In this document: in pieces, positions 18,665-56,321 of the stretch | How positions within the stretch are numbered: position 1 is the first letter of the stretch | Layout: every line of letters starts with the position of its first letter | Source: Octopus sinensis | Taxonomy: Eukaryota | DNA: 64,000 nucleotides | Reading direction: 5' to 3' | Assembly: GCF_006345805.1 (NCBI RefSeq) | Contig: NC_043023.1 | Location: 16,306,001-16,370,000, forward strand | The notes under the pieces: model-generated | Told to the model about the DNA's origin: nothing | What the model saw: the letters and a program-made list of their open reading frames with translations, nothing else | Databases searched by the model: none | Position numbers and translations under genes: made by a program

Positions 18665-19340
18665 CCAGGGATACAGGCATCCAGCAACAGGACCTCCGTA
18701 ATGCTATGATGGATCGTGAAGTCTGGCGTAGCATGGTAAATTCCATTGTCTCTACCACGGTCGCGATACCAGAGGGCGCACCCTCTCCTACCCTAACGTA
18801 ATCTCCAGGGATACAGGCATCCAGCAACACGACCTCCGTAATGCTATGATGGACCGTGAAGTCTGGCGTAGCATAGTAAATTCTATTGTCTCAACCACGG
18901 TTGTGATACCAGAGGGCACACACTCTCCTACCCTAATGTAATCTCCAGGGATACAGGCATCCAGCAACAGGACCTCCGTAATGCTATGATGGACCGTGAA
19001 GTCTGGCGTAGCATAGTAAATTCTATTGTCTCAACCACGGTTGTGATACCAGAGGGCACACACTCTCCTACCCTAATGTAATCTCCAGGGATACAGGCAT
19101 CCAGCAACAGGACCTCCGTAATGCTATGATGGACCGTGAAGTCTGGCGTAGCATAGTAAATTCCATTGTCTCGAACACGGTCACGATACCAGAGGGCGCA
19201 CACTCTCCTACCCTGATGTAATCTCCAGGGATACAGGCATCCAGCAACAGGACTTCCGTAATGCTATGATGGACCGTGAAGTCTGGCGTAGCATGGTAAA
19301 TTCCATTGTCTTGACCACGGTCAAACAATGATGATGATGA
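18665..19340 (+). mobile_element. Five tandem copies of the terminal 140 bp of an RTE-clade LINE
   Basis: CCAGGGATACAGG recurs at 18665, 18805, 18945, 19085 and 19225. The unit translates DTRGRTLSYPDVISRDTGIQQQDLRNAMMDREVWRSMVNSIVSTTV (RTE C-terminal RGR..DR..WR pattern). Only the last copy has an (ATG)n tail. Paralog at 48605-49280. Confidence 0.85.
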
Positions 19341-19772: not shown

Positions 19773-20898
19773 ACAGTTCGCTGTGAACCTGAAAGGAAAG
19801 ATTTTGCACCTTTTATGGCATTCACAACCATCCAATAACACAAAAAAACGTTGGACACTTGACAATAATTTATAATTTTAAGCAAGAAATAATCAGCGTT
19901 TCAGATATAAAAATAAATAAACAATTATACAGAAAAGGAAATAAAATCGCAAAAGGTCCTTGACTTGCTTAAAGAAAACAACTTCCAGGCCAGATTCCCG
20001 AAGCAGTAGGAATTGTGGGGCCAGTGTACAAATCCTAAACCAAAAGAAACACAAACAGGAGGTGCAGCAAGTACCCTTATAGGGATCACCGAACGCATTC
20101 TGTAAGGCGAGGCGCCAACAATGGTAAGAACTTCACTGTGGCAAATGTCACAGGTGGAAGAAATGGGTCACACTTCATTTCCTATGCTTAAGGATTTTGT
20201 TCTCGTTGGCTACGGAAGCAGTGACCCTTTGATTATAATTGAAGATATTTATGCTAAAGCAATGGGTATACATATGCAAATGTACCCCACCGACTTTGTT
20301 TCTTCATAACTTCTGGAAAAATGGGTATTTTTAAATGAAAATTTTGAGAAATACCTTTAAGAAAGTGTAGATTGCAATTATATTGGAATAGCACACGTTG
20401 GTGGGACACCACACACACACATCACACATCATCTCATTCTTTTGCATTCTAAGATTCAGTCAAAATTTTCAAATTTGGAATATTCATGTAATTTTCCATG
20501 CTGAATCTGCTACCGCTCACTTTTTCTGGACATAATTTTTTAAAAAGTGGACCTTTTCTGTTTGTGTTTTTCCCTTCAGCTCCTTCGGTTTCAAATTTAT
20601 TGATTTCAAGTTTAGTGTATTGATGTAGTTTTGTCTGTTAATTATATAAATGAAATTAGTTGTTGTCCTAAATTGATAAATATACAGTTAATAGCTTTTA
20701 AGATTTTTAAATTCCCAGTAAAAGACGGAGCAGAGTTTTGGAAAAAATATTGCTAAAATATGGATATAATTTATTTAAAAAACCAACGATGCCAATGCAG
20801 TCAGTGAAAGTCTTAATCTGATAAATAGAATTATTTTTTTCTTTTAGAGGATAAATATAGATAAAAAAACACAAATTGTAGCGTTCTTATACAAATGT

Positions 20899-21032
20899 TT
20901 ATTTCTTAAAATATTTGCAGCAGAAGAAAGAGTGTCCGACAAGGATTATAGCAAGGCTGAGTATGCCAAGAATGATTCCGACAATCTCGAGTGTTCTGAG
21001 GGGTCTTGATCCATTAGGTTCAGGTTACGGAT
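20899..21032 (-). pseudogene. Gene A terminal exon: (N)P-stop followed by a vestigial stalk/transmembrane/cytoplasmic reading frame
   Basis: Acceptor ttgtcaactgcag|AT CCG TAA CCT GAA.. continues in frame as PEPNGSRPLRTLEIVGIILGILSLAIILVGHSFFCCKYFKK*. AATAAA overlaps the final stop. Confidence 0.75.
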
Positions 21033-23268
21033 CTGCAGTTGACAAACAATAAAATATATACCTTTTGTTTTTAACAAAAAATAGTAATATCTCCCAAGTT
21101 TGACCATTTTCATACTAAACTATTAAAAAATACTTTCGTTTCTGTTATACAAATTCCATTTCAAAGTGATCTAAAGGAAAAGTCCCCATCAAAATTTCCA
21201 GTAACACTATGTTGCACACATAAGCTTGGTTATATAAAGCCTTGTGAGTGGATTTGGTAGACGGATACTGAAGGAAGCCCGTTGTATATATGTATATATA
21301 ATGTATATATATATGTGTGTTTGTGTGTCTGTTTGTCCCCCTAGCATTGCTTGACAACTGATGCTGGGGTGTCTATGTCCCCATCACTTAGCAGTTCAGC
21401 AAGAGAACCGATAGAATAAGTACTAGGCTTACAAAGAATAAATCCTGGGATCGATTTGATCGACAAAAGGCGGTGCTCCAGCATGGCCACAGTCAAATGA
21501 CTGAAACAAGTAAAAAGAGAAAGAGAAAGAGAATATAACCCGCCCCCCCCACACACACCTTGGTATTGACCCCCTCATCCTTTGCCCTTGTGGCAAATAA
21601 AAGAAACCCTTATTATATACAACTATCAGCTGAGTCCATTGTGAAGATGGCCCCTCTACTTTCCCTCAACCAGGAAGGGCAACCAGTTTTTATCTGCTCG
21701 GGGCCCATGGCAAAGGGGATCATACAGTGGACATGTCTGAAAGGGCTGAAGACCAGCAACTGCCATTTTGTCAAAACCCTAATAAACTTTTTCAGGTTTC
21801 ACTTGAAGAGGAAAATCAGGGTGGAGAGGTAAGTACTGGCTTCCAAGCAGTTTGTTGAAAGGTGAGTGAGAGAGGTGAGCATTACCTGAGTGAATGGGCC
21901 TTCTCTTTCAGAGTGTACCTGTATATTGGAGAGGAAAGACTGGGAGAGAGTATCCACCCTGGTGGTCAGGGAGACCTTGGATTTTGTGGGCTTTCTTTAC
22001 GTGTGGCCCTTGAAAGTCCCCCCACTATCAGGGATCTTACTTTGACTTTCTTTTATTCTTTGTATGACTTTTTACATGCTAAAACCCACACTGGACCCTC
22101 CCGAATGTTTTGCTTTGTGTTAGCCCTCTGTGGTTAATAAAGAAATTATTATAAATCATTTCCTTACTCTTTATCTTCAAATCAATTCTTCCAACTTTAA
22201 GGTTGTCGTCTTCAAATCTCCAAGTCAAACATTCCTTAGTTACGTTTTTGATCCAAAGCTTGGAGATACTTGCTATCTGTGTCACTTTATAGTCAGGGCC
22301 ATCAGCGCATGTCCTGTCACATTCATATCTATTATCCTGGCAAATCCAAGCCACCGGTCGTTTCATGTTTGGTACATATATCTCAAGGTTGAGATCTCTA
22401 TAGAGCTCAGCAGTTCCTGAAATAAAGAAATCAAGTTTGCTTCCAAATCATATGGTCCTGGGTTCAGTCCCACTACACAGCACCTTGGGAAAGTGTCTTC
22501 TACTACAGCATCAGCCTTGTGAGTGGATTTTCAAGATGGAAATTGAAAGAAGCCCATTCTATGTATAATTGTGTGTATGTGTGTGTATATATATATATAC
22601 ATACACACTTGTGTCTTTCAAAGCCTTGTGAGTGTATTTGATAGATGGAAACTGAAAGAAGCCCATTGTTTATATATATGTAAATAGAAAATTATTATTT
22701 CTAAGTCTCTGAATGAGAAACATTCAGTAACATTACTCGAGAGTAAAGATTATTTGCCAACATAATATGGCAGTCCTAGTTAGGGTGATTGTTACTGCTA
22801 TTTAGCCCTAGGAAACACTGCCTCCAGCTGCGTATATGACACATTATCTATGTCCTATGGGATGCTAAACTCCCTTGTTTGAAAATATAAGGATGCAGCT
22901 AGTGCGTCATATAGCCAGCTGGAGGCGATGTTTCCTAGGGCTAAGGAACAGTAACAATCGTCCTAACCAGGACTGCAATATTATGTTGGCAAATAATCTC
23001 TACCCTAGAGTACTGTTACTCAATGTCTTTTGTTCAGAGATTTAGAAATAATTTTCTATTTGTTAGATCAGAGACTTTGTGTCACTTTGGAAAGTATATA
23101 TTTTGGACAAGAGTTTAGTGGAGTCATCTCTAGCCGAGCAGTTATTCGGTGCTGATGAAGGGAAATAACCCAGAGACCATTGGTATGCAGATAGTGTGCT
23201 GTATAACCAGCTGGAGATGATGTTTCCTGAGACAACTGCCACATTATGTTGGCAAATAATCTTTACTT

Positions 23269-23303
<35 letters not shown>

Positions 23304-23712
23304 GAGTTCAGCAAAAATTTAGATTCAAGTGAAAATGTTACTTAATTTAGATGCACCAGAATTTTGTATGGTGTTATCCTTAGAAATCCGTGGGGTGATT
23401 ATAATGAAAATAAGCAACAAGAATTACTCCGGTAATTTGGTACGATCGTTTCGTACTACATCATTTTATTAAATGTTGTAAGTATTACAACAGTTTTAAA
23501 ATACTGAGCACTCATCAGCCAATTATAGAGGTTTTCCATTAATACAAAAATGTTCAAGTTAAGTGGCAACATATAGAGAAGAAAGCCTCTATAATTGGCT
23601 GATGAGTACTCAGCATCTTAAATCTGTTGTAATACTTACAGCATTTAATAAAGTGATGTAGTACGAAACGATCGTACCAAATTACCGGAGTCATTCTTGT
23701 TGCTTATTTTGA

Positions 23713-26700: not shown

Positions 26701-29700
26701 TCTTTCATCAAAACTTTATTGAGAATTTTCAAAATGTGCTCCATCGGCACAATGGAAATTTCAAATGTATCTGTAGACTTGTGAAACACATTTGGAAGTA
26801 TTTGAGGAGTTTATCTTCTGCACTGCTAACTGAATGCATTCTTTAAGTTCAGCTAAAAGATTGCTCCATCTGGGGCATTGTGGTAAAGAAATTAATTGCA
26901 ATCGTATTGAAAAAAGCTGTCATGGACAGATAAGGAATGAAAATAAAATTATAAACAAAATTAAAAATTTAATCACTTAACATATATTAAATATGTGAAG
27001 CAGAGGCAAAAAGTACCTTTAAAAAAAAAGGGTCCATTTTCACTGAAATAGATAATTAATTCTGGGACTGTCTGTATTGAAAACACTTAGCCCCACTCCA
27101 ATGACCCTACACTCTGAAATCTTTACCAAGAACAAAGTCCATGGGGTAAAGAGTGGCTATAAGGGGAATCCAGGTGGGCAGATATGGAGATAATGATGTA
27201 AATAAACAAATAAAACTGAGTGGGTAAGATATACATCCATGCGTACACGTTAATAGAGAGGAAGCAAAGACTGAAAAATTTCAGACGGAGAATATTCAAG
27301 CATCAGAAATCTGAATTAAATATTAACAGAGCAAACTTACACAGACTAGAAAGGCACAGAAAATCAAAGGGAAGAATGTATGGTGTTACAGCTCCTTTCT
27401 TGGCAATCGGGGTTACTTCATCTTTGGTAGATGTACCATCCATACTCACAAATAGGTCTCGCTTTTTTTCACCAAAAATTTAGATAAAAATCAGGGGCAC
27501 AACCTATCCAATAGATATTACAGGGATCTGAAGTGGTGTATCGGTAGTCCATGGCATACCCTGGACCTGGGCTTTTCAGTTTTAAAATTGTTATGGAAAC
27601 TTTTCTGCAATGTTTACTAGAAAGCAGAAACTGGAAGTTTGGTATTTGGTATTTTTTTGACATCCAGTCACCCCAATCTTTAGTTTAAAAATTTTAATAA
27701 TTGCAAACCCTACTTACAAAGTTATAGTAAGAGTTATCAATAGGCACAGAAGTGGCTGTGTGGTAAGTAGCTTGCTTACGAACCACATGGTTCCGGGTTC
27801 AGTCTCACTGTGTGGCATGTTGGGCAAGTGTCTTTTACTATAGCCTCGGGCCGACCAAAGCCTTGTGAGTGGATTTGGTAGACAGAAACTGAAAGAAGCC
27901 CGTCGTATATATGTATATATATATATGTGTGTTTGTGTGTCTGTTTGTCCTCCAAATATCGCTTGACAACTGATGCTGGTGTGTCTACGTCCCTATTACT
28001 TAGCAGTTCGGCAAAAGAGAACCGATAGAATAAGTACTAGGCTTACAAAGAATAAATCCTAGAGTCGATTTGATCGACAAAAGGCGGTGCTCCAGCATGG
28101 CCACAGTCAAATGACTGAAACAAGTAAAAAGAGAAAGAGAATATAACCCCACCCACACACACACCTTGGTATTGACCCCCTCATCCTTTGCCCTTGTGGC
28201 AAATAAAAGAAACCCTTATTATATACAACTATCAGCTGAGTCCATTGTGAAGATGGCCCCTCTACTTTCCCTCAACCAGGAAGGGCAACCAGTTTTTATC
28301 TGCTCGGGCCCCATGGCAAAGGGGATCATACGGTGGACATGTCTGAAAGGGCTGAAGACCAGCAACTGCCATTTTGTCAAAACCCTAATAAACTTTTTCA
28401 GGTTTCACTTGAAGAGCAAAATCAGGGTGGAGAGGTAAGTGCTGGCTTCCAAGCAGTTTGTTGAAAGGTGGGTGAGAGAGGTGAGCATTACCTGAGTGAA
28501 TGGGCCTTCTCTCAGAGTGTACCTGTATATTGGAGAGGAAAGACTGGGAGAGGGCATCCACCCTCGTGGTCAGGGAGACCATGGATTTTGTGGGCTTTCT
28601 TTACGTGTAGCCCTTGAAAGTGCCCCCACTATCAGGGGTTTTACTTTGACTTTCTTTTATTCTTTGTATGACTTTTTACATGCTAAAACCCACGCTGGAC
28701 CCTCCCGAATGTTTTCCTTTGTGTTAGCCCTCTGTGGTTAATAAAGAAATTATTATAAATCATTTCCTTACTCTTTATCTCCAAATTAATTTTTCCAACA
28801 TTAAGGTTGTCATCATCAAATTTCCAAGTTGAACATTCCTTAGTTACTTTTTTGATCCAAAGCGTGGAGGTATTTCCATCCTGTGTCACTTTATAGTCAG
28901 GGCCATCAGGGCATGTCTTGTCACATTCATATTTATAATTGTCGCACTTCCAAACCACCGGTCGTTTCATATCAGGTATTGTTATCGAAAGGGTGAGACA
29001 TCCATTGAGCACAGCAATTCCTGAAATAATGAAATCAGTTAAGAAGTTTGCTTCCAAATCATATGGTCCCGGGTTCAGTCCCACTACACTGCACCTTCGG
29101 AAAGTGTCTTCTACTACAGCCTGTGTGGATTTGCTAGATGGAAACTGAAAGAAGCCCATTGTATGTATCTGTGTGTGTGTGTATGTATATGTGTGTGTGT
29201 ATATATGTATATACATACACACTTGTGTGTTTCAAAGCCTTGTGAGTGTATTTGATAGATGGAAACTGAAAGAAGCCCTTTGTTTATATATATGTATATA
29301 TATATGTAAATAGAAAATTATTATTTCTAAGTCACTGAATGAGAAACATTCAGTAACATTACTCGAGAGTAAGGATTATTTGCCAACATAATATGGCAGT
29401 CCTAGTTAGGATGATTGTTACTGTTATCTAGCCCTAGGAAACACTGCCTCCAGCTGGGTATATGACACATTATCTATGTCCTATGGGATGCTAAACTTCC
29501 TTGTTTGAAAATATAAGGATGCAGCTAGTGTGTCATATAGCCAGCTGGAGACGATGTTTCCTAGGGCTAAGGAACAGTAACAATCGTCCAGACCAGGACT
29601 GCCACATTATGTTGGCAAATAATCTTTACCCTAGAGTACTGTTACTCAATGTCTTTTGTTCAGAGATTTAGAAATAATTTTCTATTTTTTAGATCAGTGA

Positions 29701-32700
29701 CTGTGTGTCACTTTGAAAAGTATATATTTTGGACAAGAGTTTAATGGAGTCATCTCAAGCCGAGCAGTTATTCTGTGCTGATGAAGGGAAATAACACAGA
29801 GACCATTGGTATGCAGATAGTGTGCTGTATAACCAGCTGGAGATGATGTTTCCTGAGACTAAATAACAGTACCATTCGTCCTAACCAGGACTGCCACATT
29901 ATGTTGGCAAATAATCTTTATTTTATATATATATATATATATATATGTATACACACAAAATAAGAAAATGGAGGAATAGATTCCTTTCAATCATCAACTT
30001 CCAGATAATACCAATTCATATAATTTATTAACTAATTATTTAGATTTAATAGGACAGGGCTGTATACTTTCTCCCGTTTTATTTCTATTAGTCATAGATT
30101 GGATCATGAAGGAAACTACGATTGAAAGCCAAACAAGCATTGAATGGACGGATGTGGAAGCTGTAGAAGATCTCGACTTTGCAGATGATATAGCGCTACT
30201 TTCACAAACGTAACCAAATGCAAAATAAAATGTCAAAATTAGAAGCAATAGCTGCCAAACTAGGATTGAAAGTCAACCTCAAATCAAAAATTATGCACGT
30301 TTATGAAGTAAACATTGAATGTATTAAACTAGAAACTGGTGAACTAGAGGATGTAGCCGAGTTTATGTATTCAGGTAGTAAGATAACGTTTTCAGGTGGC
30401 ACCGACGAAGATATTAAGGTGAGAATAAGTAAGGCAAGGACCGTTTTTCACCTGTTAAAGAAAGTATGGAGCGCAAGTGTAATTTCAATAAAGAACAAAA
30501 TAACCTCTCGAAAGAGCTGTTCTTCACTCCTGCTCCAGAGCGTCGGCTGCGGGGTCACTCCGAAAAGCTCTATCTGTGACGATTTCATCTCAATCGAAGG
30601 AGAGGGGCCTTCTCTGTCCGGGTTGCGATTCCGTGGAATAAGCTGCCGGACGAGATAGTGAAGATGCCGACGACCGCTCGATTCAAAGTCTCCCTTGACC
30701 ACAAATGGCCTGAACTCTTTGCATGAACACCACCCTGTACATAACTCCATGTTCCCCTACATGGCCTTTTGCTGTTTGCTTTTTGAGCCCAAAAATTAAC
30801 TTAACTTAAGTTAAGAATTTTTAACACTAACGTAAAAGTGGTGTTATTGTATGGGGCTGAGACATGGCAAACAACAGTCAAGTCAAATAAGCAAATACAA
30901 TCATTCATCAACAGATGCTTGCGTAGTATACTTAAAATTAGATGGCCCCAACACATACGCAATATGGAGCTATGGCAATGAACAAATCAAGTTTTGATTA
31001 GGGAGCAAATATTTAAGAAAAGGAGGAAGTGGATTGGTAGCACAATTAGAAAAGACACACTAAATGTAGTGAAAAGTGCTTTAAAGTGGAAACCGGTTGG
31101 ATATAGAAAGAAAGGTAGGCCTAAGAACTCGTGGCATAGATCAACACAAAAGGAACTAGAGAAAGGAGGACATTCATGGCAGAGTATAAGTACAGAGGCG
31201 AAATATTATGCAACATGGAATTCAATTATGAGTGGCCTATACTCCACGTTGGAGGGTCAAATGTAGGAAACAAGAATATATTTACCACTTTGGGTGATCT
31301 TGTAAATGTTTGCACTTGAGAAACCTGTAAAATATGAAAACAAAAATTTTTGATTTTAAGATGAAATAATTCAAAACAATGTGAATAAATGAACACTATA
31401 TTTCACAGTAATTTGATTGCTAAATGATTAAACCAGCAATATCCGTTTTATGTTCTAAGTGGCCGGGTCCAGCCCCTCACACCTACCCTACAATGTCAGT
31501 CTAAAAATAAACAATCACATCAGCAAAATGTCAAAACTACAAAATAAAGAATGATTAATTCAAAAACCAAGACTAAATGAGCACTACATTAAACGAAATA
31601 AACTGATTGCTAACGAGTTAAAGTAGCCATACCTGGCACAAAGATTCTACCTGTTTCGTGTTTAAACTGGTAATGGGTCAGCCTTTTACACCTGTCTTAC
31701 AATGTCATTCTAAAAATGAACGGACAAGGACTGCTATGTAAAGAAGTGCTGATCTCTAACTGTGGAGGCAATCTGTGGAAGAGGTGGACCCTGGAAGGTG
31801 CAGGACAAAACGGTGGAACATGAGGGCTTTGGATGTTGAGGCTGACATGTATTGATAAGTGACTGCGATTTCTGGGGATTTGCTCTTCTACAGAAGATAT
31901 GTCAAGCTAATGGAAATCAAGGATGTGGCCAGTATCGGTAATTAGTAAAAGGCACCTGTGCCAGTGACGTGTAATTTATAAATCTTTCCTCAAAACTTTA
32001 TTGAGAATTTTCAAAATGTGCTCCATCGGCACAATGGAAATTTCAAATGTATCTGTAGACTTGTGAAACACATTTGGAAGTATTTGAGGAGTTTATCTTC
32101 TGCACTGCTAACTGAATGCATTCTTTAAGTTCAGCTAAAAGATTGCTCCATCTGGGGCATTGTGGTAAAGAAATTAATTGCAATCGTATTGAAAAAAGCT
32201 GTCATGGACAGATAAGGAATGAAAATAAAATTATAAACAAAATTAAAAATTTAATCACTTAACATATATTAAATATGTGAAGCAGAGACAAAAAGGGTCT
32301 TTAAAAAAAAAGGTCCAATTTCACTGAAATAGATAATTAATTCTGGGACAGTCTGTATTGAAAACACTTAGCCCTACTCAAATGACCTTACACTCTGAAA
32401 TCTTTACCAAGAACAAAGTCCATGGGGTAAAGAGTGGCTATAAGGGGAATCCAGGTGGGCAGATATGGAGATAACGATGTAAATAAACAAATAAAACTGA
32501 GTGGGTTAGATATACATCCATGCGTACACGTTAATAGAGAGGAAGCAAAGACTGAAAAATTTCAGATGGAGAATATTCAAGCATCAGATATCTGAATTAA
32601 ATATTAACAGAGCAAACTTACACAGACTAGAAAGGCACAGAAAATCAAAGGGAAGAATGTATGGTGTTACAGCTCCTTTCTTGGGGATTGGGCTTATTTC

Positions 32701-35700
32701 ATTGTTGGTAGATGTACCATCCATACTCACAAATAGGTCTCACTTTTTTTTCACCAAAAATTTAGATAAAAATCAGGGGTACAAACTATCCAATAGATAT
32801 CACAGGGATCTGAAGTGGTGCATCGGAGGTCCATGGCATACCCTGGACCTGGGCTTTTCAGTTTTAAAATTGTTATGGAAACTTTTCTGCAATGTTTACT
32901 AGAAAGCAGAAACTGGAAGTTTGGTATTTGGTATTTTTTTGACATCCAGTCACCCCAATCTTTAGTTTAAAAATTTTGATAATTGCAAACCCTACTTACA
33001 AAGTTATAGTAAGAGTTATCAATAGGCGCAGAAGTGGCTGTGTGGTAAGTAGCTTGCTTACGAACCACATGGTTCCGGGTTCAGTCTCACTGTGTGGCAT
33101 GTTGGGCAAGTGTCTTCTACTATAGCCTTGGGCCGACCAAAGCCTTGTGAGTGGATTTGGTAGACAGAAACTGAAAGAAGCCTGTCGTATATATGAATAT
33201 ATATATGTGTGTTTGTGTGTCTGTTTGTCCTCCAAACATCGCTTGACAACTGATGCTGGTGTGTCTATGTCCCCGTTACTTAGCAGTTCGGCAAAGGAGA
33301 ACTGATAGAATAAGTACTAGGCTTACAAGGAATAAATCCTGGGGTCGATTTGATCGACAAAACGCGGTGCTCCTGCATGGCCACAGTCAAATGACTGAAA
33401 CAAGTAAAAAGAGAAAAAGAATATAACCCCCACACACACACACCTTGGTATTGACCCCCTCATCCTTTGCCCTTGTGGCAAATAAAAGAAACCCTTATTA
33501 TATACAACTATCAGCTGAGTCCATTGTGAAGATGGCCCCTCTACTTTCCTTCAACCAGGAAGGGCAACCAGTTTTTATCTGCTCGGGCCCCATGGCAAAG
33601 GGGATCATACGGTGGACATGTCTGAAAGGGCTGAAGACCAGCAATTGCCATTTTGTCAAAACCCTAATAAACTTTTTCAGGTTTCACTTGAAGAGGAAAA
33701 TCAGGGTGGAGAGGTAAGTGCTGGCTTCCAAGCAGTTTGTTGAAAGGTGGGTGAGAGAGGTGAGCATTACCTGAGTGAATGGGCCTTCTCTCAGAGTGTA
33801 CCTGTATATTGGAGAGGAAAGACCGGGAGAGGGCATCCACCCTGGTGGTCAGGGAGACCTTGGATTTACTGGGCTTTCGTAACGCGTAGCCCTTGAAAGT
33901 GCCCCCACTATCAGGGGTTTTACTTTGACTTTCTTTTATTCTTTGTATGACTTTTTACATGCTAAAACCCACGCTGGACCCTCCCGAATGTTTTCCTTTG
34001 TGTTAGCCCTCTGTGGTTAATAAAGAAATTATTATAAATCATTTCTTACTCTTTATCTTCAAATCAATGTCTGCAGCATTAAGGTTGTCATCATCAAATT
34101 TCCAAGTCGAACATTCCTTAGTTACTTTTTTGATCCAAAGCGTGGAGGTATTTCCATCCTGTGTCACTTTATAGTCAGGGCCATCAGCGCATGTCCTGTC
34201 ACATTCATATTTATAATTGTCGCACTTCCAAACCACCGGTCGTTTCATATTAGGTATTGTTATCGAAAGGGTGAGACATCCATTGAGCACAGCAATTCCT
34301 GAAATAATGAAATCAGTTAAGAAGTTTGCTTCCAAATCATATGGTCCCGGGTTCAGTCCCACTACACTGCACCTTCGGAAAGTGTCTTCTACTACAGCCT
34401 GTGTGGATTTGCTAGATGGAAACTGAAAGAAGCCCATTGTATGTATCTGTGTGTGTGTGTATGTATATGTGTGTGTGTATATATGTATATACATACACAC
34501 TTGTGTGTTTCAAAGCCTTGTGAGTGTATTTGATAGATGGAAACTGAAAGAAGCCCTTTGTTTATATATATGTATATATATATGTAAATAGAAAATTATT
34601 ATTTCTAAGTCACTGAATGAGAAACATTCAGTAACATTACTCGAGAGTAAGGATTATTTGCCAACATAATATGGCAGTCCTAGTTAGGATGATTGTTACT
34701 GTTATCTAGCCCTAGGAAACACTGCCTCCAGCTGGGTATATGACACATTATCTATGTCCTATGGGATGCTAAACTTCCTTGTTTGAAAATATAAGGATGC
34801 AGCTAGTGTGTCATATAGCCAGCTGGAGACGATGTTTCCTAGGGCTAAGGAACAGTAACAATCGTCCAGACCAGGACTGCCACATTATGTTGGCAAATAA
34901 TCTTTACCCTAGAGTACTGTTACTCAATGTCTTTTGTTCAGAGATTTAGAAATAATTTTCTATTTTTTAGATCAGTGACTGTGTGTCACTTTGAAAAGTA
35001 TATATTTTGGACAAGAGTTTAGTGGAGTCATCTCTAGCCGAGCAGTTATTCTGTGCTGATGAAGGGAAATAACACAGAGACCATTGGTATGCAGATAGTG
35101 TGCTGTATAACCAGCTGGAGATGATGTTTCCTGAGACTAAATAACAGTACCATTCGTCCTAACCAGGACTGCCACATTATGTTGGCAAATAATCTTTATT
35201 TTATATATATATATATATATATATATGTATACACACAAAATAAGAAAATGGAGGAATAGATTCCTTTCAATCATCAACTTCCAGATAATACCAATTCATA
35301 TAATTTATTAACTAATTATTTAGATTTAATAGGACAGGGCTGTATACTTTCTCCCGTTTTATTTCTATTAGTCATAGATTGGATCATGAAGGAAACTACG
35401 ATTGAAAGCCAAACAAGCATTGAATGGACGGATGTGGAAGCTGTAGAAGATCTCGACTTTGCAGATGATATAGCGCTACTTTCACAAACGTAACCAAATG
35501 CAAAATAAAATGTCAAAATTAGAAGCAATAGCTGCCAAACTAGGATTGAAAGTCAACCTCAAATCAAAAATTATGCACGTTAATGAAGTAAACATTGAAT
35601 GTATTAAACTAGAAACTGGTGAACTAGAGGATGTAGCCAAGTTTATGTATTCAGGTAGTAAGATAACGTTTTCAGGTGTCACCGACGAAGATATTAAGGT

Positions 35701-38366
35701 GAGAATAAGTAAGGCAAGGACCGTTTTTCACCTGTTAAAGAAGGTATGGAGCGCAAGTGTAATTTCAATAAAGAACAAAATAACCTCTCGAAAGAGCTGT
35801 TCTTCACTCCTGCTCCAGAGCGTTGGCTGCGGGGTCACTCCGAAAAGCTCTATCTGTGACGATTTCATCTCAATCGAAGGAGAGGGGCCTTCTCTGTCCG
35901 GGTTGCGGTTCCGTGGAATAAGCTGCCGGACGAGATAGTGAAGATGCCGACGACCGCTCGATTCAAAGTCTCCCTTGACCACAAATGGCCTGAACTCTTT
36001 GCATGAACACCACCCTGTACATAACTCCATGTTCCCCTACATGGCCTTTTGCTGTTTGCTTTTTGAGCCCAAAAATTAACTTAACTTAAGTTAAGAATTT
36101 TTAACACTAACGTAAAAGTGGTGTTATTGTATGGGGCTGAGACATGGCAAACAACAGTCAAGTCAAATAAGCAAATACAATCATTCATCAACAGATGCTT
36201 GCGTAGTATACTTAAAATTAGATGGCCCCAACACATACGCAATATGGAGCTATGGCAATGAACAAATCAAGTTTTGATTAGGGAGCAAATATTTAAGAAA
36301 AGGAGGAAGTGGATTGGTAGCACAATTAGAAAAGACACACTAAATGTAGTGAAAAGTGCTTTAAAGTGGAAACCGGTTGGATATAGAAAGAAAGGTAGGC
36401 CTAAGAACTCGTGGCATAGATCAACACAAAAGGAACTAGAGAAAGGAGGACATTCATGGCAGAGTATAAGTACAGAGGCGAAATATTATGCAACATGGAA
36501 TTCAATTATGAGTGGCCTATACTCCACGTTGGAGGGTCAAATGTAGGAAACAAGAATATATTTACCACTTTGGGTGATCTTGTAAATGTTTGCACTTGAG
36601 AAACCTGTAAAAGATGAAAACAAAAATTTTTGATTTTAAGATGAAATATTTCAAAATAATGTGAATAAATGAACACTATATTTCACAGTAATTTGATTGC
36701 TAAATGATTAAACCAGCAATATCCGTTTTATGTTCGAAATAGCCGGGTCCAGCCCCTCACACCTACCCTACAATGTCAGTCTAAAAATAAACAATCACAT
36801 CAGCAAAATGTCAAAACTACAAAATAAAGAATGATTAATTCAAAAACCAAGACTAAATGAGCACTACATTAAACGAAATAAACTGATTGCTAACGAGTTA
36901 AAGTAGCCATACCTGGCACAAAGATTCTACCTGTTTCGTGTTTAAACTGGTAATGGGTCAGCCTTTTACACCTGTCTTACAATGTCATTCTAAAAATGAA
37001 CGGACAAGGACTGCTATGTAAAGAAGTGCTGATCTCTAACTGTGGAGGCAATCTGTGGAAGAGGTGGACCCTGGAAGGTGCAGGACAAAACGGTGGAACA
37101 TGAGGGCTTTGGATGTTGAGGCTGACATGTATTGATAAGTGACTGTGATTTCTGGGGATTTGCTCTTCTTCAGAAGATATGTCAAGCTAATGGAAATCAA
37201 GGATGTGGCCAGTATCGGTAATTAGTAAAAGGCACCTGTGCCAGTGACGTGTAATTTATAAATCTTTCCTCAAAACTTTATTGAGAATTTTCAAAATGTG
37301 CTCCATCGGCACAATGGAAATTTCAAATGTATCTGTAGACTTGTGAAACACATTTGGAAGTATTTGAGGAGTTTATCTTCTGCACTGCTAACTGAATGCA
37401 TTCTTTAAGTTCAGCTAAAAGATTGCTCCATCTGGGGCATTGTGGTAAAGAAATTAATTGCAATCGTATTGAAAATAGCTGTCATGGACAGATAAGGAAT
37501 GAAAATAAAATTATAAACAAAATTAAAAATTTAATCACTTAACATATATTAAATATGTGAAGCAGAGACAAAAAGGGTCTTTAAAAAAAAGGTCCAATTT
37601 CACTGAAATAGATAATTAATTCTGGGACAGTCTGTATTGAAAACACTTAGCCCTACTCAAATGACCTTACACTCTGAAATCTTTACCAAGAACAAAGTCC
37701 ATGGGGTAAAGAGTGGCTATAAGGGGAATCCAGGTGGGCAGATATGGAGATAACGATGTAAATAAACAAATAAAACTGAGTGGGTTAGATATACATCCAT
37801 GCGTACACGTTAATAGAGAGGAAGCAAAGACTGAAAAATTTCAGACGGAGAATATTCAAGCATCAGAAATCTGAATTAAATATTAACAGAGCAAACTTAC
37901 ACAGACTAGAAAGGTACAGAAAATCAAAGGGGAGAATGTATGGTGTTACAGCTCCTTTTTTGGGGATTGGGCTTACTTCATCGTTGGTAGATGTACCATC
38001 CATACTCACAAATAGGTCTCACTTTTTTTTCACCAAAAATTTAGATAAAAATCAAGGGTACAACATATCCAATAGATATCACAGGGATCTGAAGTGGTGT
38101 ATCGGTAGTCCATGGCATACCCTGGACCTGGGCTTTTCAGTTTTAAAATTGTTATGGAAACTTTTCTGCAATGTTTACTAGAAAGCAGAAACTAGAAGTT
38201 TGGTATTTGGTATTTTTTTGACATCCAGTCACCCCAATCTTTAGTTTAAAAATTTTAATAATTGCAAACCCTACTTACAAGTTATGGAAAGAAATTAAAT
38301 AAAATATAAATAAAACTTACAGACAAATGTTACAAACAGTAAGCAGAACAAGATCCATTTAGCCAT
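21025..38366 (-). CDS. Gene A (predicted, spliced): leader + three tandem [39-nt + 249-nt Ig-like] cassettes + terminal exon; 305 aa if all cassettes are joined, 113 aa with one
   Basis: Exons 38321-38366, 36566-36604, 34050-34298, 31286-31324, 28772-29020, 26004-26042, 22168-22416 and 21025-21032. All introns are GT-AG, phase 1, with strong pyrimidine tracts. Splicing yields MAKWILFCLLFVTFVCFSSA|NIYKITQSGIAVLNG... with no internal stop. No transcript evidence available. Confidence 0.8.
22168..22416 (-). CDS. Gene A Ig-like exon, cassette 1 (most divergent)
   Basis: tttcag|GA..AAG A|gtaagg, 249 nt: GTAELYRDLNLEIYVPNMKRPVAWICQDNRYECDRTCADGPDYKVTQIASISKLWIKNVTKECLTWRFEDDNLKVGRIDLKIK. Confidence 0.82.
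22682..23270. mobile_element. Intronic ~380-bp imperfect palindrome plus extra arm with a degenerate CTGATGAAGGG..CCC motif (Penelope/MITE-like)
   Basis: 22682-23061 is self-complementary. Copies at 29308-29920 and 34586-35200; absent from gene B. Confidence 0.7.
23433..23526 (-). ncRNA. Type I hammerhead ribozyme motif (sense to gene A pre-mRNA)
   Basis: Minus strand: AATTGG-CTGATGA-GTGCT(long stem II)AGTAC-GAAA-CGATCG-TA-CCAAATT. Palindromic stem III ACGATCGT, cleavage triplet GUA. Confidence 0.65.
23591..23684 (+). ncRNA. Type I hammerhead ribozyme motif (inverted partner)
   Basis: CTGATGAG at 23599, CGAAAC at 23664. Stem II GTACT/AGTAC is extended by CATC/GATG, TTAAAT/ATTTAA and TGTAA/TTACA. 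GUA at 23674-23676. Confidence 0.65.
23880..24120 (-). mobile_element. CR1-group LINE reverse transcriptase fragment
   Basis: KLKEGIICCIHKGGSRAGAKNYRPVSLTSHFSKVME followed by a degenerate HGFRPGRSC. Confidence 0.8.
24290..25990 (+). mobile_element. Decayed RTE-clade LINE (RT to 3' end) with nested CR1 3' fragment (~25220-25530)
   Basis: EFEKAFDSVDR, GVRQGCILSPVLF, DFADDIALL, VLLYGAETW, RKKGRPKNSW. The insert reads LRGHSEKLYL..RRRGAFSVRV..WNKLP..FKVSLDHKW with a TAACT-type tail. Confidence 0.9.
26004..26042 (-). CDS. Gene A 39-nt exon, cassette 1 (xFSSDSIYEIYQSG)
   Basis: Acceptor catcttttacag, donor G|gtaaat, phase 1-1. Confidence 0.78.
27745..28135 (+). mobile_element. Full-length tRNA-derived SINE at the cassette junction (copy at 33025-33415)
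   Basis: Head, body and (GAGAAA)n tail. It marks the join between intron-1-derived and intron-3-derived sequence. Confidence 0.85.
28772..29020 (-). CDS. Gene A Ig-like exon, cassette 2
   Basis: 249 nt, phase 1-1: GIAVLNGCLTLSITIPDMKRPVVWKCDNYKYECDKTCPDGPDYKVTQDGNTSTLWIKKVTKECSTWKFDDDNLNVGKINLEIK. Confidence 0.85.
30050..31270 (+). mobile_element. Copy of the decayed RTE + nested CR1 fragment (5'-deleted)
   Basis: Same lesions as 24290-25990. Joined at its 5' end to a MITE arm fragment. Confidence 0.9.
31286..31324 (-). CDS. Gene A 39-nt exon, cassette 2 (xFSSANIYKITQSG)
   Basis: cttttacag|GT..G|gtaaat. Confidence 0.8.
34050..34298 (-). CDS. Gene A Ig-like exon, cassette 3
   Basis: 249 nt, phase 1-1: GIAVLNGCLTLSITIPNMKRPVVWKCDNYKYECDRTCADGPDYKVTQDGNTSTLWIKKVTKECSTWKFDDDNLNAADIDLKIK; donor A|gtaaga. 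Confidence 0.85.
35330..36550 (+). mobile_element. Third copy of the decayed RTE + nested CR1 fragment
   Basis: Near-identical to 30050-31270 at a 5280-bp offset. Confidence 0.9.
36566..36604 (-). CDS. Gene A 39-nt exon, cassette 3 (completes the signal peptide: CFSSA|NIYKITQSG)
   Basis: cttttacag|GT..G|gtaaat. Confidence 0.82.
38321..38366 (-). CDS. Gene A leader exon (signal peptide MAKWILFCLLFVTFV)
   Basis: ttttttcag|ATC ATG GCT AAA TGG..GTC T|gtaagt. The acceptor 3 nt upstream of the ATG implies a further non-coding 5' exon that I did not locate. Confidence 0.82.
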
Positions 38367-51083: not shown

Positions 51084-51217
51084 TTATTTCTTAAAATATT
51101 TGCAACAGAAGAAAGAGAGTCAGACAAGGATTGCAGCAAGGCTGAGTATGCCAAGAATGATTCCGACAATCTCGAGTGTTCTGAGGGGTCTTGATCCATT
51201 AGGTTCAGGTTACGGAT
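51084..51217 (-). pseudogene. Gene B terminal exon with vestigial TM frame (TAA at 51210-51212, additional TGA at 51120-51122)
   Basis: ttgtcaattacag|AT CCG TAA PEPNGSRPLRTLEIVGIILGILSLAAILV*LSFFCCKYFKK*. Confidence 0.75.
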
Positions 51218-54200
51218 CTGTAATTGACAAACAATAAAATATATACCTTTTGTTTTTAATAAAAAAGCTTGACCATTTTCATACTAAACTATTAAAAAAT
51301 ACTTTCGTTTCTGTTATACAAATTCCATTTCAAAGTGATCTAAAGGAAAAGTCCCCATCAAAATTTCCAGTAACACTATGTTGCACACATGAGCTTGGTT
51401 ATATAAAGCCTTGTGAGTGGATTTGGTAGACGGATACTGAAAGAAGCCCGTCTTATATATGTGTGTGTTTGTGTGTCTGTTTGTCCCCCTAGCATTGCTT
51501 GACAACTGATGCTGGGGTGTCTATGTCCCCGTCACTTAGCAGTTCAGCAAGAGAACCGATAGAATAAGTACTAGGCTTACAAAGAATAAATCCTGGGGTC
51601 GATTTGCTTGACTTAAGGCGGTGCTCCAGCATGGCCACAGTCAAATGACTGAAACAAGTAAAAAGAGAAAGAGAAAGAGAATATAACCCCCCCCCCACAC
51701 ACCTTGGTATTGACCCCCTCATCCTTTGCCCTTGTGGCAAATAAAAGAAACCCTTATTATATACAACTATCAGCTGAGTCCATTGTGAAGATGGCCCCTC
51801 TACTTTCCCTCAACCAGGAAGGGCAACCAGTTTTTATCTGCTCGGGGCCCATGGCAAAGGGGATCATACAGTGGACATGTCTGAAAGGGCTGAAGACCAG
51901 CAACTGCCATTTTGTCAAAACCCTAATAAACTTTTTCAAGTTTCACTTGAAGAGGAAAATCAGGGTGGAGAGGTAAGTGCTGGCTACCAAGCAGTTTGTT
52001 GAAAGGTGGGTGAGAGAGGTGAGCAATACCTGAGTGAATGGGCCTTCTCTTAGAGTGTACCTGTATATTGGAGAGGAAAGACTGGGAGAGGGCATCAACC
52101 CTGGTGGTCAGGGAGACCTTGGATTTTGTGGGCTTTCTTTACGTGTGGCCCTTGAAAGTCCCCCCACTATCAGGGATGTTACTTTGACTTTCTTTTATTC
52201 TTTGTATGACTTTTTACATGCTAAAACCCACACTGGACCCTCCCGAATGTTTTTCCTTTGTGTTAGCCCTCTGTGGTTAATAAAGAAATTATTATAAATC
52301 ATTTCCTTACTCTTTATCTTCAAATTAATTCTTCCAATATTAAGGTTGTCATCTTCGAATTTCCAAGTCGAACATTTCTTAGTTACTTTTTTGATCCAAA
52401 GCGTGGAGGTATCTCCTAAATGAGTCACTTTATAGTCATGGCCATCAGCGCATGTCCTGTCACATTCATATTTATAATTGTGGCACTTCCAAACCACCGG
52501 TCGTTTCATGTTCGGTATTGTTATCGAAAGGGTGAGGTTTCCATTGAGCACAGCAGGTCCTGAAATAAAGAAATCAGTTAAGAAGTTTGCTTCCAAATCA
52601 TACGGTCCTGGGTTCAGTCCCACTACACAGCACCTTGGGAAAGTGTCTTCTACTACAGCATCAACCTTGTGAGTGGATTTTCTAGATGGAAATTGAAAGA
52701 AGCCCATTGTATGTATATGTGTGTGTGTGTATGTGTGAGTGTGTGCGTGTGTATGTATGACTGGCAGTGTGAAGCGGCTGACCTCCCTTGTTCGAAGGTT
52801 ATAATGGACAGTTTGTGTGTCAAATAGCTAGCTTGAGGCGATGGCCTCATGGAGCTAATCAGCGACAGCTTTTAGTCTTATATCTATAAGACTGCCATAT
52901 TAATATGGCGATAACAATTAATTTCCAGTAACGCTGCCGTAATCTCTTTTAGAGAGACTTAGTAATTTTAATATTTCTATTATATATATATATATATAAG
53001 ACCAACTTACCAAGGAATGTCATGCCGAGTCTTGCATGGAAACGGAGCTACAGATAAATTTGAAGTAAAAACAGGAGTTCGACAGGGCTGTATCCTTACT
53101 CCCTTTTTATTTCTATTAGTCATAGATTGGATTATGAAGAAAACTACGATTGAAAGCCAAACAAGCATTGAATGGACGGATGTGGAAGCTGTAGAAGATC
53201 TCGACTTTGCAGATGATATAGCGCTGCTTTCACAAACATAGCCAAATGCAAAATAAAATGTCAAAATTAGAAGCAATAGCTGCCAAACTAGGATTGAAAG
53301 TCAACCTCAAATCAATAATTATGCACGTTAATGAAGTAAACATTGAATGTATTAAACTAGAAACTGGTGAACAAGAGGATGTAGCCAAGTTTATGTATTC
53401 AGGTAGTAAGATAACGTTTTCAGGTGGCACCGACGAAGATATTAAGGTGAGAATAAGTAAGGCAAGGACCGTTTTTCACCTGTTAAAGAAAGTATGGAGC
53501 GCAAGTGTAATTTCAATAAACAACAAAATAACCTCTCGAAAGAGCTGTTCTTCACTCCTGCTCCAGGGTCACTCCGAAAAGCTCTATCTGCGACGATTTC
53601 ATCTCAATCGAAGGAGAGGGGCCTTCTCTGTCTGGGTTGCGGATCCGTGGAATAAGCTGCCGATGACCGCTCGGTTCAAAGTCTCCCTTGATCACAAATG
53701 GCCTGAACTCTTTGCATGAACACCACCTTGTACATAACTCCATGTACCCCTACATGGCCTGGCTTTCTGCTTTTTGAGCCAAAAAATTAACTTAAGATTT
53801 TTTAACACTAACGTAAAAGCGGTGTTATTGTATGGGGCTGAGACATGGCGAACAACAGTTAAATCAAATAAGCAAATACAATCATTCATCAACAGATGCT
53901 TGCGTAGTATACTTAAAATTAGATGGCCCCAACACATAAGCAATATGGAGCTATGGCAAAGAACAAATCAAGTTTCGATTAGGGAGCAAATATTTAAGAA
54001 AAAGTGGAAGTGGATTGGTAGCACAATTAGAAAAGACACACCAAATGTAGTGAAAAGTGCTTTAAAGTGGAAACCGGTTGGATATAGAAAGAGAGGTAGG
54101 CCTAAGAACTCGTGGCGGAGATCAACACAAAAGGAACTGGAAAAAGGGGGACATTCATGGCAGAGTATAAGTACAGAAGTGAAAAATTATGCAACATGGA

Positions 54201-56321
54201 ATTCAATTATGAGTGGCCTATACTCCACGTTGGAGGGTCAAATGTAGGAAAGAAGAATATATTTACCACTTTGGGTGATCTTATACTTTTGTGCCCTTGA
54301 CAAACCTGTAAAAGATGAAAACAAAAATTTTGATTTTAAGAATAAATGAACATTACATTTCACAGTAATTTGATTGCTAAAGGATTAAAGCAGCCATATC
54401 TGTTTTATGTTCTAAGTGGCCGGGTCCAGCCCCTCACACCTACCCTACAATGTCAGTCTAAAAATAAACAATCACATCATCAAAATGTCAAAACTACAAG
54501 ATAATGAATGATTAATTCAAAAACCAAGTCTAAAGGAGCATTACATTAAACGGAATAAACTGATTGCTAACGAGTTAAAGTAGCCATACCTGGCACAAAG
54601 ATTCTACCTGTTTCGTGTTTAAACTGGTAATGGGTCAGCCTTTTGCACCTGTCTTACAATGTCATTCTAAAAATGAACGGACAAGGACTGCTATGTAAAG
54701 TGCTGATCTCTAACTGCGGAGGCAATCTGTGGAAGAGGTGGACCCTGGAAGGTGCAGGACAAAACGGTAGAACATGAGGGCTTTGGATGTTGAGGCTGAC
54801 ATGTATTGATAAGTGACTGCGATTGCCAAAAAAAAACTCATATTGCTCAGAAACTGAAAAAATTTGTTCTGAAGGAGTGTGAAATGTTTGGGTTCTCCCT
54901 AGAAAATATTGGAAACATATATGAAATTCCCACGTATTTCGATAAACCAGGAAACACTACAGCAGACACAGAGGGAAACGAAGCTGTTAAAGTAAAAACA
55001 TCTGAGAATTTATTAAATAATGACGGGTTGTGGTTAAGAAAACGAAGATCATGTCAACAGCAGCCACAACAAACATCAGCATCAAGATCGATAATGAAGA
55101 GATCGAAGTGGTTGATCATTTCATCTTCCTTGGCTCCAAAAGAAATCAAGATGGTGACTGCACTCCAGAAAAAAGACAGCGGATAGTACTAGGCAGAGAG
55201 GCAATGGTCAGCATGAGCAGGGTCTGGAAGAGTAGAGACATCAGACTCGCTACCAAATGCAGATTGGTGAATGCAATTGTCTTCCCAATAGCAACATATG
55301 GATGCGAGACCTGGACACTAAAGAAAGCTGACCAGAAGAGAATTAATGCATTCGAGCTTTGGTGTTGGAGAAGACTTTTATGGATTCCATGGACAGCGAG
55401 GCTCACTAATGGAGAAGTTCTTAAGCAGATCAGGCCGAAACTGTCACTAGAAGCTAGGATCACCAAGCGTAGATTGGCATATTTCGGTCATATTATGCGG
55501 AGAAAATCCCTGGAGAAGGACATCATGCTTGGAATGGTCAGTGGCAAGAGAGGAAGAGGCCGACCAAGAACCCACTGGCTTGACACCATCAAGAGTGATA
55601 CCAGAATGGACATAGCCAATCTGAAAGAAGCGGCCCAGGATTGAACTGACTGGAGGACACTGATCCATCGAGTGACCGAGAGTCGACTTCGACTGAGCGG
55701 ATAGAGAGATAGTGGTTTTGAAAGATAGTGGGTGATTCTCATACACAGTACCAAGATTAGTGTTGTATGGGGTGGGTGATGGGTGTGAGGGCTCACTGTT
55801 AATTAACCAGGGTGGGATATAGGGAATGTTTTGGGACCTGAGGTTCTGTAAATAAGTTGTTAATGAGGCAGATAATTTATAAAGTTAATCCAAACATGAA
55901 AGCACAAAAAAAACACAACACGAGGACATGGAACAAATATAGTATTATTGGACGCTCAGGAAAGAAGGAGGGTCTAACGTTTCGAGCGGAGCTCTTCGTC
56001 AGAAACAAATGAGAAGGAAAGATCCGGAGAAGGGAAGACAGAGAATTTATAAGTGGGATTGTGGTGGAAAATCATGAATTTTCCAAAATTTTCTTCCATA
56101 AAATGCATCATTTCTAAAGCTGTGATGAAAACAAAATTGGGAAACTCCCTACCAAAACAAAGAAAATCCTCCTTATGTGAGTGACCCCATTCCAGACCCC
56201 TGTGCACCTGAGTACGTTTGCCTTAACAAAAATTAGTTATGGAAAGAAATTAAATAAAATATAAATAAAACTTACGGTCAAATGTTACAAACAGTAAGCA
56301 GAACAAGATCCATTTAGCCAT
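51210..56321 (-). CDS. Gene B (predicted, spliced): secreted single Ig-like domain protein, 113 aa
   Basis: Exons 56276-56321, 54267-54305, 52311-52559 and 51210-51217 give MAKWILFCLLFVTFDRLSRAQKYKITQSGPAVLNGNLTLSITIPNMKRPVVWKCHNYKYECDRTCADGHDYKVTHLGDTSTLWIKKVTKKCSTWKFEDDNLNIGRINLKIKNP*. All introns are GT-AG, phase 1. Confidence 0.8.
53000..54250 (+). mobile_element. Fourth copy of the decayed RTE + nested CR1 fragment (gene B intron 2)
   Basis: GVRQGCILTPFLF, DFADDIALL; same nested CR1 insert with extra small deletions. Confidence 0.9.
54825..55025 (+). mobile_element. pogo/Tigger-like transposase fragment
   Basis: LENIGNIYEIPTYFDKPGNTTADTEGNEAVKVKT resembles the pogo DDE motif IGN.DETP.YFD.P.N.T.D..G.K.V.IKT. 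Confidence 0.65.
55030..55710 (+). mobile_element. 5'-truncated BovB-like RTE LINE, ORF open over ~200 codons
   Basis: KTKIM..FIFLGSK..DGDC..LGR.AM..KSRDI.L.TK.RLV.A.VFP...YGCE.WT.KKA...RI.AFELWCWRRLL..PWTAR..YFGH.MRR..LEK..MLG...G.R.RGR.R..WLD. Confidence 0.9.

Follow-up and report, generated by a model that had tools for sequence, protein, structure and literature searches.

Secreted and membrane-bound immunoglobulin mu chains are made by way of alternative last exons, and Thy-1 is a small surface protein with a single immunoglobulin (Ig) domain and a glycosylphosphatidylinositol (GPI) anchor. The CEA family is a tandem, fast-evolving Ig-superfamily array that has been shaped by gene conversion (PMC5856374). 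In that family the GPI-linked CEACAMs of primates came from minimal mutations that include a stop in the transmembrane (TM) exon, a stop also interrupts the TM exon of three horse CEACAMs, and the PSGs are secreted paralogues (PMC5856374). Here we describe two neighboring copies, A and B, of a gene for Ig-like proteins in the octopus Octopus sinensis, in which the last exon has an in-frame TAA stop codon ahead of what reads as a former membrane anchor. They lie in a 64,000-nucleotide stretch of DNA, called the window below (RefSeq assembly GCF_006345805.1, contig NC_043023.1, positions 16,306,001 to 16,370,000 of the forward strand). A first-pass annotation of the window had proposed that an ancestral type I membrane protein became soluble through one nonsense change. 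Our comparison of the copies with their relatives makes it probable that the anchor exon was disabled in both by one shared nonsense change, which would leave anchorless, secreted products if the genes are transcribed.

The last exon of copy A reads, on the minus strand, cag|AT CCG TAA CCT GAA CCT AAT GGA ... AAG AAA TAA at 21032-20899. Beyond the first TAA the frame stays open for 41 codons (21024-20902), encoding PEPNGSRPLRTLEIVGIILGILSLAIILVGHSFFCCKYFKK, until a TAA at 20901-20899. The counterpart in copy B, at 51217-51084 on the same strand, differs by few substitutions, and relative to PEPNGSRPLRTLEIVGIILGILSLAIILVGHSFFCCKYFKK it has Ala for Ile, TGA (51122-51120) for Gly and Leu for His. 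The frame in which the last exon is read is not arbitrary, because the upstream domain exon (22416-22168 in A, 52559-52311 in B), which begins after ...tttcag and ends ...ATA AAG A|gtaagg, fixes it at phase 1; the exon junction in both copies is AAT-CCG-TAA, or Asn-Pro-stop. The first-pass annotation had described this terminal exon, the continuation of its frame through stalk, helix and tail, the TAA common to both copies (21027-21025 in A, 51212-51210 in B) and the intactness of the upstream exons. All of this holds, with exact coordinates and with upstream reading frames and splice sites confirmed.

An open run of 41 codons would by itself be weak evidence for a former coding sequence, since its chance probability at the local base composition is P = 0.12, and it is homology that makes the reading as an anchor relic secure. 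In tblastn the relic aligns with the TM exon of family members at E = 3e-9 to 5e-9, and its protein identity to a coding last exon in Octopus vulgaris is 82%. The top 19-residue Kyte-Doolittle hydropathy in it is 2.67. Judged by its sequence, the stretch is a real relic of a region that encoded a stalk, a TM helix and a tail. It has a type I layout, with a 19-residue helix (LEIVGIILGILSLAIILVG) followed by 11 residues that include KYFKK, and with the signal peptide, the one hydrophobic helix and the basic cytosolic side the ancestral protein would have been a type I single-pass protein. Homologues with an open last exon have the same layout of signal peptide, helix and tail. A word-index protein search with the 41-residue relic returned no candidate. 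The features of the two last exons are listed below, where unit II is one of the two O. vulgaris gene units of locus L002 used in the comparison:

21025..21027, minus strand: copy A nonsense codon TAA, where relatives have a conserved Lys codon, AAA (NPK or DPK in the family)
21028..21032, minus strand: residual coding part of the copy A last exon, AT CCG, which with the A from exon 3 gives Asn-Pro
20902..21024, minus strand: relic in copy A, with stalk PEPNGSRPLRT, helix LEIVGIILGILSLAIILVG and tail HSFFCCKYFKK, now predicted to be 3' untranslated region (UTR)
20935..20937, minus strand: GGA in copy A; TGA stands here in copy B and O. vulgaris unit II
20898..20903, minus strand: AATAAA poly(A) hexamer of copy A, overlapping the ancient stop at 20901-20899
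51210..51212, minus strand: TAA nonsense codon of copy B, aligned with AAA in O. vulgaris
51087..51209, minus strand: anchor relic of copy B, with the TGA at 51122-51120 in common with O. vulgaris unit II

The annotation had also pointed to homologues with an open TM exon as a check, and these were found. Most family members end in a homologous open exon (...TM...YKYF..), with (N/D)P-K-..., a hydrophobic stretch and a short basic tail such as ...GYKYFTK, and several stop exactly at the hydrophobic stretch in the style of a GPI signal. In O. vulgaris, where two loci (L002 and L003) were compared, the last exon of L002 unit II (about 89086-89217) has CCG AAA CCT in place of the CCG TAA CCT of the window and is otherwise nearly identical. 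The last exon of L002 unit I (23290-23409) has AAA at the TAA site as well. The O. vulgaris protein P0012 continues past this site and ends ...LSLAAILV at an annotated TGA stop. Given the AAA in the closest O. vulgaris exons, the relic is real and the ancestral codon is, on this comparison, AAA for Lys and not a Glu codon, so the GAA>TAA origin (giving PEPEP) that was suggested at first has to be replaced. We refer to these exons as closest copies and not as orthologues because the 5' parts, the domain exons and the 3' flanks point to different O. vulgaris partners. P0012 and copy B up to its TGA have a sequence pattern like that of a candidate GPI signal, with NGS or SGS, RPLRT, 18-19 hydrophobic residues and a stop. 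Additionally, the O. sinensis paralogue LOC115225458 (L001 20394-20468) has an open last exon, GAQGTSSLRTKSILVIGMIIAVII-stop, with a hydrophobic end and no cytosolic residues, and isoforms of the neighboring LOC115225109 use two alternative acceptors in the equivalent exon. The type of anchor therefore varies within the array.

Every gene unit is built alike: the exon for the signal peptide comes first, then the 39-nt linker, then the exon for the 82-residue Ig-like domain, and a last exon for stalk, anchor and tail closes it. A single A-to-T change turned the third codon of the last exon from AAA (Lys) into TAA. This change would have arisen once, in the O. sinensis lineage, and would have reached both units through a duplication of roughly 10 kb or through gene conversion of the 3' ends. 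A stop in a last exon is normally not a trigger of nonsense-mediated decay, and such decay is thus not expected for this TAA. The acceptor of the last exon is intact in both copies, copy B has a second AATAAA hexamer at 51088-51083, and none of the AGs in and around the last exon, all of which were tested as alternative acceptors, gives the anchor frame from the phase-1 donor. A frame-restoring downstream acceptor that would bypass the TAA, named by the annotation as fatal to its reading, is therefore not among them. With an intact acceptor, a poly(A) hexamer and no such AG, a secreted product is expected if the units are transcribed. Units A and B would then yield a signal peptide and one or more Ig-like domains ending ...KIKNP, and the old anchor sequence would be 3' UTR that drifts near the neutral rate. 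The candidate products would have 113 (B), up to 305 (A) or 496 (X6, a model of the National Center for Biotechnology Information, NCBI) amino acids. The part of the original proposal that concerns the anchor exon thus stands, as a single A-to-T change, and secretion is its predicted consequence. The soluble product may serve as a decoy or a soluble ligand, or else the change may be the first step of gene death.

Identity between copies A and B is 97.7% across intron 3, falls to 96.0% in the relic and rises to 98-99% in the 3' flank. The relic has 5 differences in 126 nt, 4 of the 5 being nonsynonymous or nonsense, and with an intron divergence of 2.3% this is consistent with a relic that drifts at about the neutral rate. 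In a three-way comparison of intron 3, 16 sites are private to A, 8 to B and 27 to O. vulgaris. These patterns make A and B sisters relative to O. vulgaris unit II, and the TAA would therefore have a single origin on the O. sinensis side. A 3' block of roughly 10 kb is present in both units (12653-22586 matches 42901-52736). The earlier view that the shared TAA predates this duplication is upheld only in part: a single origin fits the site patterns, and gene conversion could also have spread the TAA from one copy to the other. The same annotation had the TM frame decaying independently after the TAA, with an extra TGA in B, and this is not borne out by the comparison. The TGA and the Leu codon that follows it in copy B are common to O. 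vulgaris unit II, where the TGA is the annotated stop, and the private changes in the relic are mostly in copy A (ATA, GGA and CAC). It is possible that the TGA came first, giving a tail-less and possibly GPI-type anchor, and that a T to G change followed in A; it is equally two steps, and also possible, that the TGA arose twice, in B and in O. vulgaris. A wider reading, to which we give a minority chance, is that the anchor was shed stepwise by successive nonsense changes in one exon, from TM through tail-less or GPI-like to secreted, and that the end products are soluble decoys.

All the coding exons of genes A and B lie on the minus strand. The 82-codon Ig-like domain exon is present four times (22416-22168, 29020-28772, 34298-34050 and 52559-52311), each with a 39-nt linker exon 3.6-1.7 kb upstream, and all of these exons are phase 1-1 with intact splice sites. 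Two start exons, 38366-38321 and 56321-56276, encode MAKWILFCLLFVTF.., which by inspection is a signal peptide followed by SSA or SRA, and a conserved upstream exon precedes each of them (41375-41268 in A, 58041-57934 in B). The upstream exon is 94% identical by tblastn to O. vulgaris models that translate it. There are two last exons in the window. Gene B has the order start exon, linker, domain and last exon and codes for 113 amino acids before the TAA. In gene A a single start exon is followed by three linker-and-domain units in tandem and by a last exon, and with all of them included the product would have 305 amino acids. The 113-residue product of the annotation thus fits gene B, and for gene A it has to be extended to as many as 305 residues. 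An exact look-up of the conceptual 113- and 305-residue products in a protein collection found neither. All ten coding exons of the two genes and their splice sites are intact. The exons other than the last ones are:

22168..22416, minus strand: Ig-like domain exon, gene A unit 1, phase 1-1, with the donor for the junction to the last exon; LOC115225115 isoforms contain an identical segment
26004..26042, minus strand: linker exon, gene A unit 1, 39 nt, phase 1-1
28772..29020, minus strand: Ig-like domain exon, gene A unit 2
31286..31324, minus strand: linker exon, gene A unit 2
34050..34298, minus strand: Ig-like domain exon, gene A unit 3
36566..36604, minus strand: linker exon, gene A unit 3
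38321..38366, minus strand: start-codon exon, gene A, MAKWILFCLLFVTFV, the signal-peptide core; in no NCBI isoform
52311..52559, minus strand: Ig-like domain exon, gene B, identical to a segment of isoforms X1-X7 and others
54267..54305, minus strand: linker exon, gene B, LSRAQKYKITQS, with the likely signal-peptide cleavage site inside
56276..56321, minus strand: start-codon exon, gene B, MAKWILFCLLFVTFD, used by NCBI isoform X10 (P0065)
57934..58041, minus strand: upstream exon of gene B, probably 5' UTR, with its gene A counterpart at 41268-41375

The domain exons do not evolve like the sequence around them. Their ratio of nonsynonymous to synonymous rates (dN/dS) is about 0.75-5, with no purifying selection. 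Exon 3 of A is 84% identical to that of B, compared to 97.7% in the intron, and the A branch has 28 nonsynonymous and 4 synonymous changes where the B branch has 3 and 0. Positive selection on A exon 3 after the duplication was considered and dropped, as O. vulgaris P0045 and P0063 have the same exon type (TAELYRDLNL...), and A exon 3 differs from the P0063 model at 8 of 82 residues. The presence of this type in O. vulgaris means that the exon is old and that its flanks were homogenized. All paralogue pairs (22168-22416 with 52311-52559, 28772-29020 with 34050-34298, and 26004-26042 with 31286-31324) have exons that are 82-96% identical inside flanks that are 97-100% identical; units 2 and 3, for example, agree at 100% of the 600 nt that precede the exon and at 96% of the exon itself. 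Divergence that is confined to exons points to patchy gene conversion, diversifying selection or both, and given this pattern the intactness of the exons says little for function after the TAA.

A profile search with single-exon translations over 1.84 billion representative proteins gave 34 clusters at E <= 1e-3, and those with names belong to Octopus sinensis, O. vulgaris, O. bimaculoides and Argonauta. The profile also had weak matches to a few long repeat proteins whose sequences look bacterial. By this search the gene family is restricted to octopods. In its members, 1-5 Ig-like domains precede an anchor that is TM or GPI-like. An AlphaFold2 model of the domain, made from 33 family domains, has seven strands with a mean predicted local distance difference test score (pLDDT) of 95.7 and a predicted TM-score (pTM) of 0.84. 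The top Foldseek matches to it in the PDB are Ig domains of titin, obscurin, MLCK and NCAM2 and an antibody VL, at TM-scores of 0.55-0.72, with TM-scores of 0.6-0.72 and E about 4e-4 to 3e-3 for the I-set matches titin M1/I27, obscurin and NCAM2 Ig1. Single domains have no match in Pfam at E <= 10. Summed over the five-domain P0064, Pfam I-set (PF07679) gives 28.9 bits against a cut-off of 23.7, and no single stretch passes. The canonical pair of Cys in the B and F strands was not found in the domain, whose B strand, LTLSIT, has no Cys; the Cys positions are 25, 32, 36 and 62, of which C32 alone is invariant, and Trp23 is in the predicted C strand. On the predicted fold, the domain is Ig-like and I-set-like and belongs to a lineage-restricted family.

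The eight linker and domain exons of the window are identical to segments of isoforms of O. sinensis LOC115225115, and from this identity we infer that the window belongs to the LOC115225115 locus on chromosome CM016885.1. NCBI has 18 protein isoforms of this gene, and they use the exons in question as follows:

Isoform X6 alone (XP_036369926.1, P0064, 496 amino acids): ends ...IDLKIKNP at the TAA of the gene A last exon
15 isoforms, X1-X3 and X7-X18: end in another, intact TM exon, NPKPEPPKPKTYSILEIVG...GYKYFTK
2 isoforms, X4 and X5: end in further exons
Gene B last exon: used by no isoform
Gene A start exon: used by no isoform
Gene B start exon: the start of isoform X10

The intact TM exon NPKPEPPKPKTYSILEIVG lies outside the window, and its O. 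vulgaris counterpart is at L003 44070-44201. LOC115225115 spans at least 345 kb, overlaps the opposite-strand LOC115225116 (380 kb) and encloses histone clusters, and its models chain exons from several complete tandem units. The O. vulgaris models of the array (CAI9743596/97 and CAI9743624) have histone H2B, or a 5' extension derived from a repeat, fused to them. Public gene models across the array look composite, as would be expected because the exons of neighboring paralogues are nearly identical. A literature search for six LOC identifiers gave no match.

Several of these observations weigh against the loss of the anchor by one shared nonsense change. Among the 18 NCBI isoform models, the last exon of A with its TAA is absent from 17 and that of B from all 18, A's own start exon is in none of them, and the counterpart of the gene A last exon is also skipped in the O. 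vulgaris model P0063. That exon's true orthologue in O. vulgaris might carry the stop too, and gene conversion in place of descent could explain why A and B share it. Additionally, with no purifying selection and a divergence of about 2%, the intact reading frames do not prove function. Transcripts that skip the TAA had been named by the first-pass annotation as a refutation; on paper 17 of the 18 models are of this kind, and these models look composite.

The most serious competitor, although we think it clearly less probable, is that gene death has begun: A and B would be decaying members of a birth-and-death family, the TAA a recent loss-of-function change and the soluble product without a role. 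The domain exons change at or above the neutral rate (the 3 nonsynonymous and 0 synonymous changes of the B branch, the 8 of 82 residues between A exon 3 and P0063), the relic drifts neutrally, the B last exon and the A start exon are in no NCBI model, and there are frameshifts in other family members such as P0010. However, the ten coding exons and their splice sites are all intact, and a last-exon stop leaves the mRNA stable and the signal peptide and Ig-like domain complete, so that a secreted protein would be made if the gene is transcribed. Model X6 does use the TAA exon, and a dN/dS above 1 is found family-wide, including in members with intact anchors. A somewhat less probable account takes the public models at face value. 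The A and B domain exons would then be cassettes captured in the larger, read-through gene LOC115225115, whose main product is membrane-bound, and the TAA exon would be a minor soluble alternative. The 15 of 18 isoform models that end in NPKPEPPKPKTYSILEIVG...GYKYFTK, from an exon outside the window, fit this account, as does the phase 1-1 of all the linker and domain exons, which keeps any combination in frame, and O. vulgaris models such as P0063 likewise chain several units. But these same models extend over at least 345 kb across the opposite-strand LOC115225116 and histone clusters, and must pass intact acceptors, poly(A) hexamers and the promoter-proximal exons of other units. The fusion of the O. 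vulgaris models to histone H2B is another sign; such features are what composite models usually show where an array is made of near-identical exons. Each unit also has a conserved 5' exon and a start exon of its own.

Two other explanations are very improbable. One is that the TAA is an assembly or sequencing error, which would have undone the annotation. Only one assembly is involved, and isoform X6 comes from that same assembly and is not independent. The same base is found in two copies, though, that differ by 2-4% nearby and in their upstream structure (one unit compared to three), and a shared sequencing error is unlikely because the copies are this different around the exon; the change is also a substitution in non-repetitive sequence and not a homopolymer indel. 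The other, raised in the annotation for gene A, is recoding, where readthrough or double adenosine-to-inosine (A-to-I) editing of UAA to UGG gives an anchored form from copy A. Coleoids edit their mRNA heavily, and copy A has no further in-frame stop between the TAA and the ancient one, with GGA where B has TGA. Against this, UAA is the least leaky stop, and none of the known readthrough motifs fits its context, CCG-UAA-CCU, in which a C follows the stop. In the minimum-free-energy structure predicted for the exon the TAA does not pair (z = -1.08), and no inverted-repeat arm over it was found within 1.1 kb. The downstream frame is neutral and in copy B is closed by the TGA, and editing would yield Trp and not the ancestral Lys. 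Neither form of recoding thus finds support. We also place hardly any weight on the TAA as a conditional switch, by which tissue-specific editing or readthrough would re-create the type I form from the mRNA of a secreted protein; the stepwise shedding of the anchor is more likely than this.

If the loss of the anchor by a shared nonsense change is correct, the locus is a clean and datable case of a surface protein that lost its anchor by one base change, after which a second copy was affected, and this base change is absent from the closest copies in the sister species. The family itself is an uncharacterized, octopod-restricted and tandemly expanding set of Ig-like genes. Its exons diverge much more quickly than its introns, as one would expect for recognition molecules that act in immunity, reproduction or chemosensation, and few such receptor families have been described in cephalopods. 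On present evidence the event is of a type well known in fast-evolving tandem receptor families, and is ordinary birth-and-death evolution. The stop is already implicit in one public isoform, X6. For practical use, LOC115225115, LOC115225116 and several O. vulgaris models appear to need long-read curation.

The surroundings of the units are rich in repeats. The three gene A units are a 5.3-kb repeat (24768-38292, 97.9% identical), and each repeat has a reverse-transcriptase fragment on the plus strand (24560-24925 matches RVT_1 at E = 1.6e-13). Arrays of a 147-bp satellite flank each gene unit (2950-3530, 16976-18153, 47211-48093 and 62432-63166), and an array of about 9 kb of the same satellite is found between two O. 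vulgaris units (L002 38188-47371). Tandem repeats of 254 bp lie between the upstream exon and the start exon of both genes (40099-40834 and 56790-57507) and also in the O. sinensis paralogue LOC115225458 (L001 10086-11641). A fragment resembling a C2H2 zinc finger (..EKPCHCDICGEWFSQ.., 18505-18792, minus strand) lies 2 kb downstream of each last exon, beside 140-bp tandem repeats (18665-19322, with copies at 48605-49262), and in the O. vulgaris model P0063 this fragment is taken as coding, in an exon that joins two gene units. Tandem repeats of 122 and 168 bp at 22-404, which read MHIFH.AHIPRSTF.. on the minus strand, are of the same kind as the repeat that serves P0012 of O. vulgaris as a probably spurious N-terminal extension. 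Purine-rich low-complexity blocks with a GC skew above 0.4 (14001-16000 and 44001-46000) occur in each copy of the duplicated 3' block. A degenerate third copy of the upstream 5' exon at 2179-2286 on the minus strand (ETKFLFLLVFPS*FLKISIASSH..) suggests a further gene unit that would start near the low-coordinate end of the window. Positions 1-9516 of the window are collinear with the region upstream of the O. vulgaris units (L002 430-8869 and L003 25856-31979).

Looking back at the known systems, the octopus domain is like the I-set domains of titin M1/I27, obscurin and NCAM2 Ig1 in its predicted seven-strand beta sandwich, and differs from them in the missing single-domain Pfam match and in the absence of the canonical B-strand Cys. 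The octopus proteins are further set apart as extracellular, with a predicted signal peptide and anchor. Thy-1 is similar in a different way to O. sinensis P0001 and O. vulgaris P0012, which have a signal peptide, one Ig-like domain and a hydrophobic C-terminus without cytosolic residues, and in which the small residues NGS or SGS precede the hydrophobic stretch by 8-9 positions. They are not homologous to Thy-1, and a GPI attachment of the octopus proteins is what this sequence pattern would predict. The immunoglobulin mu gene offers a parallel if the NCBI models are real, as the octopus locus would then have both a soluble end (X6) and a TM end (X1-X3 and X7-X18). The parallel is limited in that the octopus 'soluble' exon is a mutated anchor exon and the TM exon comes from a distant, other unit.

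The closest analogue is the CEACAM/PSG group, as the octopus family likewise mixes TM, tail-less or GPI-like, and anchorless ends. The two have no sequence relationship, and no vertebrate CEACAM is among the named profile matches from the 1.84 billion proteins searched. They also differ in where the change fell: the octopus TAA is upstream of the stalk and the whole anchor is lost, whereas in the CEACAMs the helix was trimmed into a GPI signal. We therefore regard the resemblance, by analogy, as one of mechanism and not of membership, with the same route having given rise in mammals to the GPI-linked and secreted CEACAM and PSG proteins.

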